A stretch of 63,747 nucleotides of DNA, the filler included, from Pelomyxa schiedti (lineage: Eukaryota; Protista; Evosea), in the NCBI GenBank assembly GCA_020536535.1. It is 5 parts of 5 records of this genome, joined end to end, with 100 filler letters (N's around TTAATTAATTAA, not from the genome) between each part and the next. Parts side by side here need not be neighbours in the genome. Positions count along the whole stretch, not along the records: positions 10,088 to 36,754 come from JAHLWZ010000318.1; 4 more parts are not named here. The stretch is one strand, 5' to 3'. Below, piece after piece: positions 8,276-16,133 of this stretch. The notes beneath the pieces are model-generated. The model did no database searches and had not been told where the DNA came from. It saw nothing but the letters and a program-made list of their open reading frames with translations. A program made the translations under genes and the position numbers. Within the stretch, counting starts at the first letter, position 1; every line of letters starts with the position of its first letter.

Positions 8276-9424
8276 TCACCAAGTGGTGAAAGTAGCAATA
8301 CAACAGAGTTTGGGTGTTGGCTGAAAGGCGTTCAGTGCCTTGAGTACGGATTCGCACAGTGACATTGCTTGTTTGGCGGCTATGATGCTGCTGTACCTGG
8401 TCAACATCACGCAGCTAGTAGCGGGTGCTTCGCTGCTGCCGGCGGGTGCCGTATTCGTTGTGGGGGGTGTGGTTTCTGCGTTTGTGGTACTGCTTGGAGA
8501 CGGTGGTGAAGATGGGGGTAATGGGGGAGTTTGCGAGTGTAGTGTGCCTACTGCACATATTGAACATGAGCCGCCCAGAGTCTGGACAATTTCTAGTGCC
8601 ATAGACTTGATAACCGCTTTCATTTCGGCCATATGGGATGTCGAAAATACTCTCACTACTAGTGGTATTACTCCTACTGCATTTAATTGTTATTATAGTC
8701 CATACAAATCTACACATACAGGCTTTAGAGCAGATCGTTGCGGCATCAAAGACAGGGGCGACATCCCCTTGGAACGATTTACTAGTCAGACTTTGGCTTG
8801 AATTAGAACAAACTGAATGCTTGGGGTTATTTGTTTTCAGGTTTTTGATCTTGAATGGAGCAGTGGCATATCTAAGCCCTGCAAAATCCAGTTCAATTAT
8901 TAACTCAGATTCTCGCGCATGAGTTCTGATAGGGGATAAGTGTATTTGGAAACCTATCGTTAACTCTAAAGAATTGCAGTTCCCATGACACCTAGGTGCA
9001 GTACAGAAAGGTACTATTGTGAACGCGTATGATTCCAGCTTTTCGTCTTCCTTTACAAACTTTAACTCCAGGCCTCTATTATTGTTTTTCTGTGAGCGCT
9101 CCGGAGGTATAACTCGAAATATCAAAGTAAACCTTTCCTAGAGTGGAACCCATAGCATACAGCAGATTTAGCGGCATTCATAATGTCCTGGCGTGTCATC
9201 CCCCTTTCCCTTCTCACCATACTGTTCACAACGAGATACAACTGGGGGGAGAAAAATAACATACTCAGCATCAAATGGACACTCTACAATAGAATAACCC
9301 CACACAGAAATAAAAAAAAAAAAAAAAACACCTGAGGGCGAGGCCGAGACCGAGGCGAAAATTCACACGAAGACAGCTCCAGAGCCTCCAATAGTCCTAG
9401 TTCTCCACCAACCACTGTCGCCAT
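8276..9424 (-). CDS. Hypothetical protein (spliced)
   Basis: ORFs 8276-8656 and 8415-9125 plus a first exon MATVVGGELGLLEALEL followed by a GT donor and a T-rich intron. Confidence 0.55.
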
Positions 9425-9832
9425 ATGCCGTACTCTTACCCGCCTTTGTCTCCTTGTGTGAGGCAATCTGTGATCTGTGATTGTTTCTGCTTTGTTATGA
9501 ATTTTGTGGATCTCGCCTGTCCCCAAATTTGACGCAGGGAACTAATCTCTTTTCCGTAATGACAACAGCACAATGCTCCTTACCGAAAATCTCAAAAAGC
9601 AGTGACACCTCCCACAATGATCTTTGATTTGATAACTACCACTTCGGAGATCTGAGACATTAGCCTAAATGGCTGAATAAAATAATCAACAGACCGGAAC
9701 GCTATCATTTTCTTTGTCATCGCTCGGGATCGCGGTCTGGTGTTTTTTTTATTCAGCCAAATACAATATTGTCCAATAAAGTACCCGAAGGGTGCGGCAA
9801 CGCAGAGGGACCGTGGATCTAGATCCAAACGC

Positions 9833-9987
9833 ATGGACCCATTCTTGTTGAGTGACGACGATCTCAGTGACTTGGACTTTCCTCCCAGTAACAGTGGCGT
9901 CGTTGTGGGTGGCTCCGACGCGAATGTTGCCGACGCAGCAGATACGTCCGCGGGAGACCTTCTGGACGACGCATCGAACTTTGACAT
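9833..9987 (+). CDS. 5' fragment of an acidic hypothetical protein, truncated at the contig end
   Basis: MDPFLLSDDDLSDLDFPP... is open to the spacer. Confidence 0.4.
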
Positions 9988-10087
9988 NNNNNNNNNNNNN
10001 NNNNNNNNNNNNNNNNNNNNNNNNNNNNNNNTTAATTAATTAANNNNNNNNNNNNNNNNNNNNNNNNNNNNNNNNNNNNNNNNNNNN
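9988..10087. other. Artificial contig spacer (N44-TTAATTAATTAA-N44)
   Basis: Six-frame stop linker flanked by Ns; identical at four places. Confidence 0.97.
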
Positions 10088-13000
10088 AACGATCTCCTCT
10101 CTAAGTACATGCGGTGGTTGCAGTCACAGGACCAAAAAGAAGGAAAAGACTTCTGGCTGAAGCTCCTCGACGGTTTCACAGAGCCAACCCCGATCCCCTT
10201 CTGTGAAGATTTGCACGTTTCTCATAACACAGGGGAAAGGTCTATTGACAGTATGTCCTTGGAGCTCGATTGTGGAACTGTACAACATCTTCAGCAGTAC
10301 GCGCGTAAAGCAGGAACCACGCCAAATGTTGTGTTGCAGCTTGTGTGGGGTGTTCTCCTGTCTAAGTGCTGTAAAGATTCCAACCCAGTTGTGTTCGGTA
10401 CCGTGACATCAGGAAGGCCTGCTGAAGTGACTGGAATTGAGCAAGGTGTTGGCTTGTTTGCCACTACACTTCCTGTGGTTATCAAACTCTGTGAACAGCA
10501 GAGTGTTGATGATTCCTTATTACAACTGCACCAACACCTCACAAGTGATATTTCCCACTATTGTTACATTCCGCTTTCTGACTTAACGCATTGGAAAAAC
10601 CAGGAATCTCAGCACAACAATTCACAGCCTCTATTCCACACAATTTTTGCATATGAAAACTACCCCTTGGAAGAAGAAATCTTGAAACAAATTTCCGGTG
10701 CCAGTTCAGGGGTTGAAATGGAATCACTTGGTGGATTACAAGTGAATTATTTTTACAACTCCCAAAAGACAAACTTTTCTTTGGCAATTGTAGTTACACA
10801 AACAGCGGGTGGAAAATTAAATGTTAGCTTTGAGTATGACAGTTTACTTCCCACTCAGGTTGTGAGTAAAATTTCCAAGACTTATGAGCAAATCCTCAGA
10901 AGTGTTATTTCATGTACACCTTCAACCAAGATTGGAGATGTTGATTGCATTCCAGCAGAGGACCGCCAAAAACAGCTGGTGAAGTGGAATTCCACAGAAA
11001 TTGACATGGGACCATTTGGAGAAAATGAGAACAAACCTGCACATGTCATGTTTGAAGAACAAGCACAGAAAACGCCAGATGCTGTTGCCCTTGTCTTTGA
11101 AGAAGTGGCAATGACATACAAACAGCTGAACGAGATGTCCAACCAGCTCGCACATTACTTGAGAACTTTGGGAGTTGGTGTTGACACCCTTGTCCCGATT
11201 GTGGCTGAGAGACTCCCTGAGACACTCCTTGGAGTGTATGGAATCCTCAAAGCCGGTGGTGCATACGTTCCGCTGGATCCAGAGTGGCCTGAAGAGAGGC
11301 TGGTTTCTGCAGTTCGTGACCTTTCTCCTTCTTTGATTCTTCTGTCTTGTTCCTCTCAATCATCAGCAATCCAAGTACTTGCACAACGCACTAACACCAA
11401 GTTAAAAGTGCTTGCCCTGGACTCAGACAAGGGCCTTTGGAGTGGCTTCCCCGTGAGTTGTGTCCCTCAAAACTGGCGTCCTGCCACTGGGCTTGAAGCT
11501 TCATATGCGATCTTCACTTCTGGATCCACTGGTGTTCCAAAAGCTGTAGTAAACGTACATCGTGGTACCACCAATTATATCGCATGGCTTCAGAACACCT
11601 TCCATCTTCTACAAACTGACCGTGCTTTGCTTCAATTTCCTTTCTTCTTTGATGCTTCCACGACGATGTTCATGTGGCCACTTGCAGTTGGTGCATCTGT
11701 GATCATGGCACCACCTGGAGCTCACAGAGATCCAGAAGCTCTTGCTCTTCTGATCAAAAAAGAAAGTGTAACCTTTGTCCATTTCATCCCCACAATGATG
11801 GACCACTTCCTGAAGATGGTACCTTTTCCAATCTCTTCTCTGAATCTGGTTTTTTGTGGGGGTGAGGCTTTGTCGTTTGACACTGTTGATCTGTTTCGCA
11901 AAACATTCCCAAGTGTTGAGCTCTACAACCTTTATGGTCCGACAGAGGCATCTNNNNNNNNNNNNNNNNNNNNNNNNNNNNNNNNNNNNNNNNNNNNNNN
12001 NNNNNNNNNNNNNNNNNNNNNNNNNNNNNNNNNNNNNNNNNNNNNNNNNNNNNCTCTTCTCTGAATCTGGTTTTTTGTGGGGGTGAGGCTTTGTCGTTTG
12101 ACACTGTTGATCTGTTTCGCAAAACATTCCCAAGTGTTGAGCTCTACAACCTTTATGGTCCGACAGAGGCATCTGTTGCAGTGAGCAGTTTCAACTGCAA
12201 AAACATTGACCCACAAATCCGCAACAAGTGCTCGACGGTTCCCATCGGATTCCCTGCAGCAAACACCAAATTGTTCCTCCTGAACAGCACCCTCGGGATT
12301 GTTCCGATTGGATGTGCTGGGGAGATATGCATCGCGGGCACTTGCCTCTCCAGGGGATACCTCAACAAACCCGAGCTGACGTCGGAACAGTTTGTGCCGA
12401 ACCCGTTTGGTTTGGGAACAATTTACAAAACGGGAGATCTTGGCAGGTATCTCGACAACGGTGCTGTGGAATACATTGGTCGGATCGACTCACAAGTGAA
12501 ACTTCGAGGCTTGCGAATCGAACTTGGCGAGATTGAAGCCGCCCTCAAGTCTCACCCTTCCGTTCTTCAGGTTGCCGTCAAACTGCGTGAGGATGCACCA
12601 GGTGTCCGTTCACTTGCAGCATATGTGGTTCCGTCACAGATTGGTGCTGGTGATGACATCGTGGAAGTTCTCCACGATCACCTCACGAAGAAACTGCCAG
12701 GTTACATGGTTCCAGCCTCATTCACGGTCATCCCGTCACTTCCAATGACCCCCAGTGGGAAACTGGACANNNNNNNNNNNNNNNNNNNNNNNNNNNNNNN
12801 NNNNNNNNNNNNNNNNNNNNNNNNNNNNNNNNNNNNNNNNNNNNNNNNNNNNNNNNNNNNNNNNNNNNNGGTGATGACATCGTGGAAGTTCTCCACGATC
12901 ACCTCACGAAGAAACTGCCAGGTTACATGGTTCCAGCCTCATTCACGGTCATCCCGTCACTTCCAATGACCCCCAGTGGGAAACTGGACATATCTCGGCT

Positions 13001-14762
13001 TCCTGTACCTACACGGCAATTATTTGGGAGAACTGCAGAACTTCTTCCACAAACTGCCCAGGAAAGGCAGCTCCACTCCATATGGTGCCAGGTACTGAGT
13101 GTTGAGTCGGTGAGCATTGATGCGGATTTCTTCCACCTTGGTGGGGATTCCATATTAGCCCTACAGCTAATTCAACGAATGCGTTCCAAGGGACTTAACG
13201 TCTCCCTTCAAACCTTGCATCATCATCGAACCATACAGTCCCTTTCTAACTTTTTGGAGTCTCAGCCGCACATTCCTTCAATAATGCAACTACAACCAGT
13301 CTTATCCCAAGCAGTTGAAACAGAAGCTCTTTTACTCACACCAATACAGCAATGCTTCTTCTCGTGGAACCTTGTTGAACCTAATCACTTTAATCAATCC
13401 TGCTGGATACACTTTCCCTGTGCGACAACAGTGAATGCTGTGGAGACGATGCTTTCCATTCTCCTCCGGTACCATGATTCCCTCCGCATTAGGTTTCCTT
13501 TTTCGGACGGTACTGTTAAGCCACAGTATGCAGATGATTTTACCGTGCGAGTCTGTGAGACAGTTCTTGCGCAATCCAATAAACCACAATGGAGGGATAT
13601 TATGTCAGCGAAGGTGGCACACCTTGAACAAAGCCTTGACATCATACACGGGCCTGTTGTTGTTGCCGAGTTGTTCACTTTTTCTGAAGTAGCAGGAGTG
13701 ACACAAGTCTTATTTTTAGTTATCCACCACTTAGTTGTTGATTGGATATCTTGGCGCATTATACAAGATGATTTACTATTGTTGCACCAACAAATACTGG
13801 AAGGCAGGGTCCTCTCCCTTCCTCCTAGAACCAGTTCATTTTCCAAATGGGGTAAAGCTTTATTGAATTACTTGCCAAGTGTAGAGAGCAAACAAATGGA
13901 CTACTGGAGGAATGTCGACACTTTACAACGCACAAGCAGCCTCCCAACTGACGAATGTGACACCCATCTCGGAGGACCACCCCTTGACGAGGTGAAAATG
14001 GTCATCTGCAAAGAACTCACGGAAGCCCTCCTCACCAAATCACATGCGGTGTACCGCACAAGTGCCAATGACCTCATTGTGACATCCCTGATGCTAGCAC
14101 TTGAGAACTGGCGTGGCCTGTCCGATCTTGTGATTCAGATGGACAGCTTTGGGCGAGACGAGTGTGTCCAAGGCGTTGATGTGTCCCGCACAGTTGGCTG
14201 GTTCACAGCAACCTTCCCAGTGCACCTCTCCATCCCACAATTCACCCAGACACAACGACAAGACTCCCGATTAGGCGCCGCAATCAAAGCCATCAAGCAA
14301 CAACTCTCACAGATCCCGGACAGAGGAATCGGCTACGGCGCACTCAAGTACATGACCCAACATCGCTCCCCGTCCCACTATTCCTTCACCGACCCAGTCA
14401 ACGCGCTGCATTTCAACTACCTCGGCGTTTTCGACAATTCCGGCTCCCGAATGTTCTTTGGCGAACCAAGCGACGCTGACACCAATGCCAATACCAATGA
14501 CCAGCAACAGCAGCAGCAGCAACAACACCATCATCACGCCATAGACCACACACAAGTGGTTGATGTCTCGCCGCTCAACTCGCTGCCCAAGGGGGTGGTG
14601 CTGCACGTCACGGTCGGCGTGATCCAGGGCCAACTCACGGCGTGGCTGTCCTATCACAAGCAGTTCTACAGACGAGACAGCATTATGGCACTGTCACAGT
14701 CGTTCCAGGCTTGTCTCGAGAAGGTCATTTCACACTGCACCAGCAAAGGATCACAACCCTGA
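10088..14762 (+). CDS. Non-ribosomal peptide synthetase, 5'-truncated: C(partial)-A-PCP-E-like
   Basis: C domain: FGTVTSGRP..GIEQGVGLF..TLPV and AYENYP. A domain: YAIFTSGSTGVPK, NLYGPTE, YKTGDLGR, GRIDSQVKLRGLRIELGEIE, PMTPSGKLD. PCP: FFHLGGDSI. E domain: LTPIQ, HFNQS, HHLVVD.ISW, SRTVGWFT, RGIGYG, FNYLG. A single intronless frame results once the 121-bp gap duplications are collapsed. Confidence 0.95.
11954..12053. other. Scaffold gap with 121-bp flanking duplication
   Basis: 11833-11953 recurs at 12054-12174. Confidence 0.9.
12770..12869. other. Scaffold gap with 121-bp flanking duplication
   Basis: 12649-12769 recurs at 12870-12990. Confidence 0.9.
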
Positions 14763-15003
14763 GTGAGATTGAGATGGAGTGAGTAACTACTACGACAGAT
14801 CTCCCTTTGGTTGCGCATGTAACATACACCAGCACCACCAAGTTTTCGTTCTATTCTTTTTTCCTATTGCCAGCGCTCTAAAAACCCTAATTTTTCCCTT
14901 TCATTCGTTTTCTGGATCTTGAGCCATCAAAATAAAAAAAAAACCTCGCCGTCTCACTCACGGTAATTACGGTACGGTCGTTAGGTGGACTACGCACTAA
15001 TAA

Positions 15004-16133
15004 ATGGGCTGCATCAACTCCCAGCCACGTCCTGATCCTGTGGAGTGTATGTCTTCTGTGCATATTTTTTTGTTTTGTTTTGTTTTATTTTTATTTTTTT
15101 CCCCCTTGTACGGCCGACCTAATTTGTGGCATTGGGTGCATTGCGGAAGTACAGCACTTAAGTCGGATAAGAAGAAAAACCCATCATTGGAACAGGGAGT
15201 AAAGGTGACACGTCGAATACTATACAATGACACTACTACAATACATCACTGATGTGGATTCAAAAACAAACAAACGAGACAGACAAATTGTGACTGACGA
15301 GAAATAAATCAGATTGTTCTGTTGGGTGATGCTGCCACAGGCAAGACTTGTTTGGTTGGAAGGGTTCTGCAGAATAAATTTTTGCAAGAAACCAGTGGAA
15401 CTGTTGGGTAATGTTTTGGCATACCGTTGAACTACTAAATTCCAGCAGGGCTGCATTTCAGGTGTTTAAAACTTTGGTAGATGGAAGAGAGATAAAACTT
15501 GAGGTGTGCTTGTTTACTCACTCTACATAAATTGATTTCTTTCTCAGATATGGGATACCGCTGGGCAAGGTGAACTACATCTACTGCACAAAAGTTTTCT
15601 AACATTGATATTAAGAGAGATTCAGGTCATTGGCACCCATGTACTACCGAGGTAATCCATCTACCTGTCTTCTTCCAATGTTTAACCTCACCCTTAGGTG
15701 CAGTGGCTGCAATTGTTGGTTTGTCCCAAAATAAAAAACAACAAAATAAAAATTGTATCGACACAAACTAACCGGTCTATTCATACAGTGTATGATATCA
15801 CGCGAAAGGTAGCTACACTTTCTTTGAAGCCCTAACTTTAACTACAAACTCCAGGAAACATTTGATGTAATGCGGCGATGGATTGATGAGCTCAACACTG
15901 CTGCCTCTGCCAATATAATTATTGCTATTGCTGGGAACAAGCTTGATTTGGCAGAGAAACGAGCAATTCCCACAGCCACAGCAGAAGATTACGTTCTAGA
16001 GATGAAGCAGGAAGGAATGAGGCCACCCATTTTCATTGAGTGCAGTGCCAAAACAGGGGAAAATGTTTCCTCCATGATCAACCAAATATGTAAGCAGCTC
16101 ATTGTCCTCAGTGACCAAGGACTTTTGGTGTAA
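15004..16133 (+). CDS. Rab5-family small GTPase with N-terminal MGC and no C-terminal prenylation motif (spliced)
   Basis: Exons: MGCINSQ.., IVLLGDAATGKT, TVGAAF, IWDTAGQ, ERFRSLAPMYYRGA.AAIV, VYDIT, GNKLDL, ECSAKTG; ends DQGLLV*. Confidence 0.9.

Follow-up and report, generated by a model that had tools for sequence, protein, structure and literature searches.

A nuclear, transcribed non-ribosomal peptide synthetase gene of bacterial type in the amoeba Pelomyxa schiedti, ending in a divergent epimerase-fold domain

The locus and its reading frame

The window, that is, the whole stretch of 63,747 nucleotides (filler included) analysed from Pelomyxa schiedti, carries at positions 10088-14762 the 3' part of a gene for a non-ribosomal peptide synthetase (NRPS), followed by a spliced Rab5-like gene. 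The searched assembly (52.4 Mb, 5337 contigs) was built with SPAdes up to k = 121, with RNA pairs used for scaffolding (PMC8887013), and two DNA runs (X1, X2) and two RNA runs (X3, X4) of the same organism were used alongside it. An earlier note on this DNA had described about 4.2 kb of uninterrupted coding sequence in the order condensation (C), adenylation (A), peptidyl carrier (PCP, or T) and epimerisation (E), and both the length and the order hold. Two 100-N gaps interrupt the segment, each flanked by an exact 121-nt direct overlap, the size of the largest assembly k-mer; with gaps and overlaps removed, 4233 nt remain, forming a single frame of 1410 amino acids whose sole stop lies at 14760-14762. 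A frameshift or loss of DNA at the gaps is ruled out by the exact overlaps, the single frame and an X1 unitig running across both. Pfam gives Condensation, AMP-binding, AMP-binding_C, PP-binding and Condensation in module order and in one frame, the last domain scores over the cut-off of NCBIfam TIGR01720, and the core motifs A3, A4, A5, A7, A8 and A10 as well as the carrier GGDS are all present. The collapsed and spliced models served for script tests of frame, length, motifs and codon use, and similarity searches used the pieces; the read layout left out the repeats at 14472-14540 and 15059-15107. The features are as follows (E* denotes the terminal domain).

10088-10975, plus strand: condensation domain C2, C-terminal half (DCL clade), PF00668 profile positions 177-455
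11051-12762, plus strand: adenylation domain A2, with A3 at 11516-11542, A4 at 11648-11665, A5 at 11927-11947 and the C-terminal subdomain to 12762
11954-12053, no strand: scaffold gap 1; 11833-11953 repeated exactly at 12054-12174, true sequence continuous and in frame, X1 unitig joint 11832 to 12054
12770-12869, no strand: scaffold gap 2; 12649-12769 repeated exactly at 12870-12990, with X2 and X4 showing another exit at 12769
13068-13256, plus strand: peptidyl carrier T2, PF00550 at 51.3 bits, GGDS at 13140-13151
13326-14762, plus strand: terminal E-fold domain E*, HHLVVDW at 13725-13745, DSFGR at 14142-14156, stop at 14760-14762
14502-14537, plus strand: poly-Q/His insertion of 8 Q and 4 H, where the earlier note had placed it (~14500-14540); a low-confidence surface loop, model residues ~378-412
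14763-14886, plus strand: 3' untranslated region, RNA contigs stopping at 14840 and 14886
15004-16133, plus strand: spliced Rab5-like GTPase gene (Ras family matches, exon translations, four GT..AG joints in RNA), a eukaryotic anchor outside the pathway

Extent of the gene and variation between runs

The contig edge cuts the frame inside C2, and the gene goes on in the 5' direction on another contig, C123, the first 121 nt of the part that begins at 10088 being identical to C123:2015-2135 (minus strand); a 12.8-kb X1 unitig extends 12.4 kb upstream unbroken. When the two are joined by script, the frame reaches 3372 amino acids in the order T0-C*-A1-T1-E1-C2-A2-T2-E*, and positions 10088-14762 would then be the 3' end of a two-module NRPS of about 3370 amino acids. 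The GenBank entry for the C123 part, KAH3766625.1, is titled 'non-ribosomal peptide synthetase, partial [Pelomyxa schiedti]'. Its N-terminal carrier T0 passes the Pfam cut-off, and C* is an LCL-clade condensation domain in which HNIVSDP puts Asn at the catalytic His. E1 keeps both His and Glu (HHLAVD, EGFGR, TISDF), and the N-terminal half of C2, with HHVILDG, is shared with the paralogous path described below; this half and the path, taken as one sequence, group with DCL domains. A1 is interrupted by an 82-nt GT-AG intron within its A5 motif (NLYG^PTE), excision of which restores motif and frame; the description of the gene as intronless consequently stands for 10088-14762 and fails for the gene as a whole.

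An alternative path, C123:1914-1, joins the same two 121-mers; its identical runs (311, 116 and 89 nt) form a mosaic with blocks of 43-56% amino-acid identity, and its pocket code is different. This path is present in X2 and X4 and absent from X1, as is a second, in-frame exit after 12769, which was not found in the released assembly. The simplest reading is that some cells carry an extra E-C-A-T unit, haplotypes of two and of three modules being kept alike by gene conversion, and the path may also be a dispersed paralog. X1 and X4 differ from the given sequence at 11300, 11308 and 11352, where the latter equals the paralogous path, and the released consensus may be mosaic there.

Nuclear location and transcription

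The gene is nuclear and transcribed. One X1 unitig (5518 nt, depth 16.7) runs from 10814 past Rab5, skipping 221 nt at each gap, and one of X2 (12,105 nt) leads from 12961 through Rab5. In the RNA runs X3 and X4, contigs span 13625-14886 and 13806-14840, ending 80-120 nt beyond the stop, and X4 RNA reaches parts of C and A too; no RNA contig of either run lies over 14950-15150. Four GT..AG introns of the Rab gene are spliced in RNA contigs, its 5' exons lying outside RNA coverage. The earlier note's claims that the PCP-E part passes unbroken into a spliced Rab5 gene some 240 bp away, and that the contig is no contaminant, were both confirmed: the putative Rab start lies 242 nt past the NRPS stop, and unitigs of two DNA runs pass from one gene into the other.

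Could the locus be a chimera in which DNA of a bacterial symbiont or contaminant was joined to the host's during assembly? Single cells with symbionts were amplified for this genome, the segment has no introns, and X2 depth is greater over A than over E, a step explained by the second C-A copy. Against this, in each of two runs a single unitig bridges NRPS and Rab5, a spliceosomal intron lies upstream, the poly-Q insert and codon use are host-like (correlation of 0.62 with host exons, against 0.38 at best for 78 bacterial NRPS loci), and paralogs sit on several contigs of 50-137 kb. Since a unitig spans A, PCP, E and Rab5 and the RNA ends after the stop, the chimera is refuted in practice and its probability is negligible.

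The terminal domain

E* departs from both canonical E domains and fungal CT domains. Its model (pLDDT 88.5) aligns with E domains at Z of 38-40 (40 to TycB3 E) and with fungal CT at Z of 25 (25.4 to 5dij), and it keeps HHxxxD (as HHLVVDW), RTVGWF and FNYLG. It reads DSFGRD (14142-14159) where bacterial domains read EGHGR, with Asp at the catalytic Glu, a residue that only a handful of some 340 scorable bacterial E domains lack. The replaced position, the Glu of EGHGRE, presumably corresponds to Glu882 of TycA. When that residue is changed to Ala (E882A), TycA loses 99.5% of its product, Glu being needed for epimerisation (PMC8905534). Moreover, the stop falls nine codons from the start of the HC motif, and the TPSDF or COM tail seen in E1 (TISDF) and in most bacterial terminal E domains is gone. 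No TE, R, CT or partner NRPS follows, the frame ending there with Rab5 as the next gene. Among the features of a canonical E domain, fold and HHxxxD are thus present, and the catalytic Glu and the TPSDF, COM tail and following DCL domain are missing; the earlier identification of the final domain as E keeps its fold and family match and loses the canonical status. Membership of the fungal CT class is ruled out by HHLVVDW in place of SHxxxD and by the Z of 25.4 to 5dij versus 40 to TycB3 E.

A relative of E* is P0001, a protein from a 1.9-kb metagenome contig (JGI 3300026161, 35% GC) that is 41% identical to E* and shares HHxxVDWIS, Asp at the Glu site and the terminal position. Its codon use correlates at 0.61 with Pelomyxa exons, and it probably comes from a related protist, an origin as yet unproven. 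The poly-Q/H loop of E* is disordered in the model, and P0001 has an acidic insert at that place. Beyond P0001, the metagenome scan yielded bacterial-level matches alone (at most 35%). Because the Asp/Trp signature is common to E* and P0001, we read E* as a candidate release domain for a dipeptide with a D-residue, at about even chances.

A possible but distinctly less favoured explanation accepts the same origin and holds that E* still works as an epimerase using Asp for the base, or is an inert spacer comparable to the E domain of LgrA, the dipeptide leaving as a diketopiperazine or passing to another Pelomyxa synthetase. The full E fold with HHxxxD, RTVGWF and FNYLG, the retained GGDS carrier and the inactive E domain at the end of LgrA (PMC10510592) speak for it, as does a DCL-clade C domain on contig C1181 that directly follows a carrier. 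That domain is, however, internal and not an N-terminal acceptor, the TPSDF/COM tail is gone, unlike in E1 and most bacterial terminal E domains, and the retention of the Asp/Trp signature in a protein of 41% identity suggests selection for a new role.

In two bacterial proteins, P0471 and P0518 (the latter marked partial), the last domain is likewise E-like, has Asp where the catalytic Glu would be and lacks a COM tail; kinship with E* is not supported, both grouping elsewhere, and they possibly form a convergent bacterial class.

Family, adenylation pockets and origin

The gene is one member of a lineage-expanded family of NRPS and polyketide synthase (PKS) genes on about 20 contigs. Genome-wide, condensation domains gave 36 matches on 20 contigs, carriers 66 and KS 39, counts that include some allelic or split copies, and 13 A domains were scored among 122 candidates. 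C151 and C753 show KS, carrier, C and A in succession, an arrangement found in PKS-NRPS hybrids. A genome search also found two spliced phosphopantetheinyl transferase (PPTase) genes (PF01648) with AASDHPPT/Sfp-like motifs on C561.

The A2 pocket reads DATHFGLVAK and may derive from a serine-type pocket: the bacterial A domains nearest the Pelomyxa clade carry nearly all DVWH-x-SL-V/I-DK, which we take to be a serine code, and at least nine codes have arisen by divergence among the Pelomyxa pockets. The A1 pocket ends in Asp-Asp and resembles bacterial TEASDD domains, an ending that we liken to what is presumably the diaminobutyric acid (Dab) code.

The best homologs are bacterial (30-37% identity over C-A and PCP-E, up to 46% over A cores), the sole named eukaryote among 360 top homologs is P. 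schiedti itself, and the Atlas neighbours are 100% bacterial. In trees under LG+G4, where the spliced A1 forms one row, the Pelomyxa A domains fall into one clade (13/13, SH-aLRT 100), as do the LCL domains (12/12, at 100) and the DCL domains (2/2, at 99), and E1, E* and P0001 form one clade at 100/100. The stems of the Pelomyxa clades are long (0.42-0.79 changes per site); the bacterial rows were gathered with this gene as query, and long stems can attract. A HMMER search of representatives, ranked by module number, served solely as bacterial backbone. Since the domains are monophyletic and about 30-46% identical to bacterial ones, a transfer would be old and not recent. The data fit a single old uptake of a bacterial NRPS that had LCL, DCL, E and Ser-type A domains, followed by expansion, donor and direction being unproven. 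An intronless recent import is ruled out by the A1 intron and the A-domain tree; what survives of the earlier note's proposal is a nuclear, expressed, domesticated gene of bacterial type, its C, A and E domains nested among bacterial rows, within a family that did not arise by a single recent import.

That the NRPS family came down vertically from an early ancestor, amoebozoan or eukaryotic, with most lineages losing it and the bacterial likeness reflecting database bias, is improbable, a judgement reached without fungal, animal or other protist NRPS in the trees. Such descent would accommodate the long stems without a specific donor, the introns, and P0001 as a possible second eukaryotic carrier. 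Opposed to it are the single named eukaryote in 360 top homologs, the all-bacterial Atlas neighbours, a fold and motif set of bacterial E/DCL/LCL and not of fungal CT type, and, as weak evidence, a Mastigamoeba genome paper without mention of NRPS or PKS.

Proposed working of the synthetase

Taken together, we consider it somewhat probable that this is a nuclear, transcribed two-module NRPS, drawn from an old bacterial toolkit that was acquired and then multiplied, with E* most likely releasing a dipeptide. An AASDHPPT/Sfp-type PPTase from C561 would prime the carriers, A1 would load the first residue, perhaps a diamino acid given its Asp-Asp pocket end, and E1, with His and Glu intact, would convert it to the D form. 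C2, of the DCL clade, would then couple this D-residue to the second residue, loaded by A2 on T2. C* is probably inactive (Asn at the catalytic His), and a T0 starter may not be added: an inactive C* would leave a free amine favouring a cyclic dipeptide, and a working C* would lead to an N-acyl dipeptide. E* apparently arose by duplication of E1, retaining His and Asp, exchanging the Glu base for Asp and losing the hand-over tail; it would release the dipeptide by cyclisation or hydrolysis, CT-like in role and of different descent, a step for which the chances seem evenly balanced. Fungal CT domains are known to release the product (PMC10510592). The expected product is a small dipeptide containing a D-residue, a diketopiperazine or an N-acyl dipeptide. 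Bdelloid rotifers (PMC11258130) and anaerobic gut fungi (PMC8106346) suggest by analogy that the compound is probably directed against bacteria, be they prey, competitors or symbionts.

Several points weigh against this account. The join of C123 to the part at 10088 is putative, depending on a shared 121-mer and on the extent of the X1 unitig. X1 and X2 probably fed the assembly, and their unitigs are a test of the joins in that they were built separately. The RNA protocol of the X3/X4 study probably captures bacterial RNA too, so that the RNA contigs show transcription and not poly(A) status. The trees held no fungal, animal or other protist NRPS, and the nesting of the Pelomyxa domains among bacterial rows, with no eukaryotic rows present, comes without a resolved donor. 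The substrate assignments are tentative, the Asp of E* may still act as a base, and product and role are inferred.

A wider view, which we hold only tentatively, is that a new release domain arose in Pelomyxa and a related uncultured protist from a duplicated epimerase (Glu to Asp), that one serine-type A domain radiated into at least nine pockets with two- and three-module variants between cells, and that the peptides and PKS-NRPS hybrids control prokaryotic endosymbionts or prey.

Relation to known systems

Canonical multimodular NRPS have been described from bacteria, fungi and a few animals. The bdelloid rotifers offer a parallel, with dozens of bacterial-type NRPS/PKS genes, one large lineage-specific condensation clade and a difficult assembly (Nowell et al. 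2024, PMC11258130). Pelomyxa differs in being an anaerobic archamoeba that houses endosymbionts, and its gene in having E and DCL domains along with a derived E-fold domain at the end; a defence role would rest on analogy. Anaerobic gut fungi are likewise anaerobic eukaryotes that share their habitat with bacteria and methanogens and carry many biosynthetic genes, partly transcribed (Swift et al. 2021, PMC8106346), but they belong to a different supergroup and their products have been seen by mass spectrometry, those of Pelomyxa being predicted. TycA, GrsA, TycB3 and LgrA (PDB 2xhg, 5isx, 6ta8) share the PCP(GGDS)-E didomain (27-33% identity, Z 38-40), from which Pelomyxa departs by Asp for Glu, Trp after HHxxxD, the missing COM donor tail and Rab5 instead of an NRPS downstream. 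Fungal CT domains such as that of TqaA (PDB 5dij) also place a domain of the C superfamily at the end of the line instead of a thioesterase, and release is what is proposed for E*; its HHxxxDW in place of SHxxxD and a structure nearer to E (Z 40 vs 25) make it CT-like in working at best.

In slime moulds, a 2025 review records no non-ribosomal peptide beyond glorin (PMC11900508). No paper on NRPS or PKS in Pelomyxa or Archamoebae was found, and the Pelomyxa genome and symbiosis papers are silent, bar the automatic GenBank name. An expanded bacterial-type NRPS family in a eukaryote is a known kind of event. This fermenting amoeba, with NRPS, PKS and hybrid genes, is an unmined source of natural products and may make small molecules so far unsought; its repertoire offers a testable idea on how it manages its three endosymbionts, and a natural experiment in the change of A-domain specificity and the possible turning of an E domain to chain release.

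Neighbouring genes and other members of the family

The open reading frames downstream match Rab, PDE, NAT10, PQ-loop (weakly) and UFD1 families, with no pathway tailoring or transport gene among them, in agreement with the earlier note for the visible side. The Rab5-like protein (15004-16133) seems to begin with MGCINS, of myristoylation/palmitoylation type, and has no C-terminal cysteines, a combination that we liken to plant ARA6/RABF1 or Plasmodium Rab5b.

Elsewhere in the genome, C151, C753, C171, C291, C508, C693, C176, C351, C750, C891 and C1192 carry many type I PKS or PKS-NRPS hybrid genes whose open frames reach 2700 amino acids; several KS domains are in pieces, as though by introns. 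The two PPTase copies on C561 (L036, L037) lie about 3.6 kb apart and are 93.5% identical over 500 nt. L014 (C1181:891-2378) is a DCL-clade C domain placed right after a GGDS carrier, without E between, and L028 and L029 (C48) are two very divergent condensation-like genes (HHVWLDALG), mutually 94% identical and outside the NRPS clades. L015 (C1326:2333-5916) consists of two C-A units, 98% identical and inverted (divergent), representing either a true inverted duplication or an amplification artefact. Lastly, L012 and L004 (C753:5734-7166 and 9151-10583) are A domains of one gene whose DNA is 99.8% identical over 1433 nt, pointing to recent module duplication or gene conversion.

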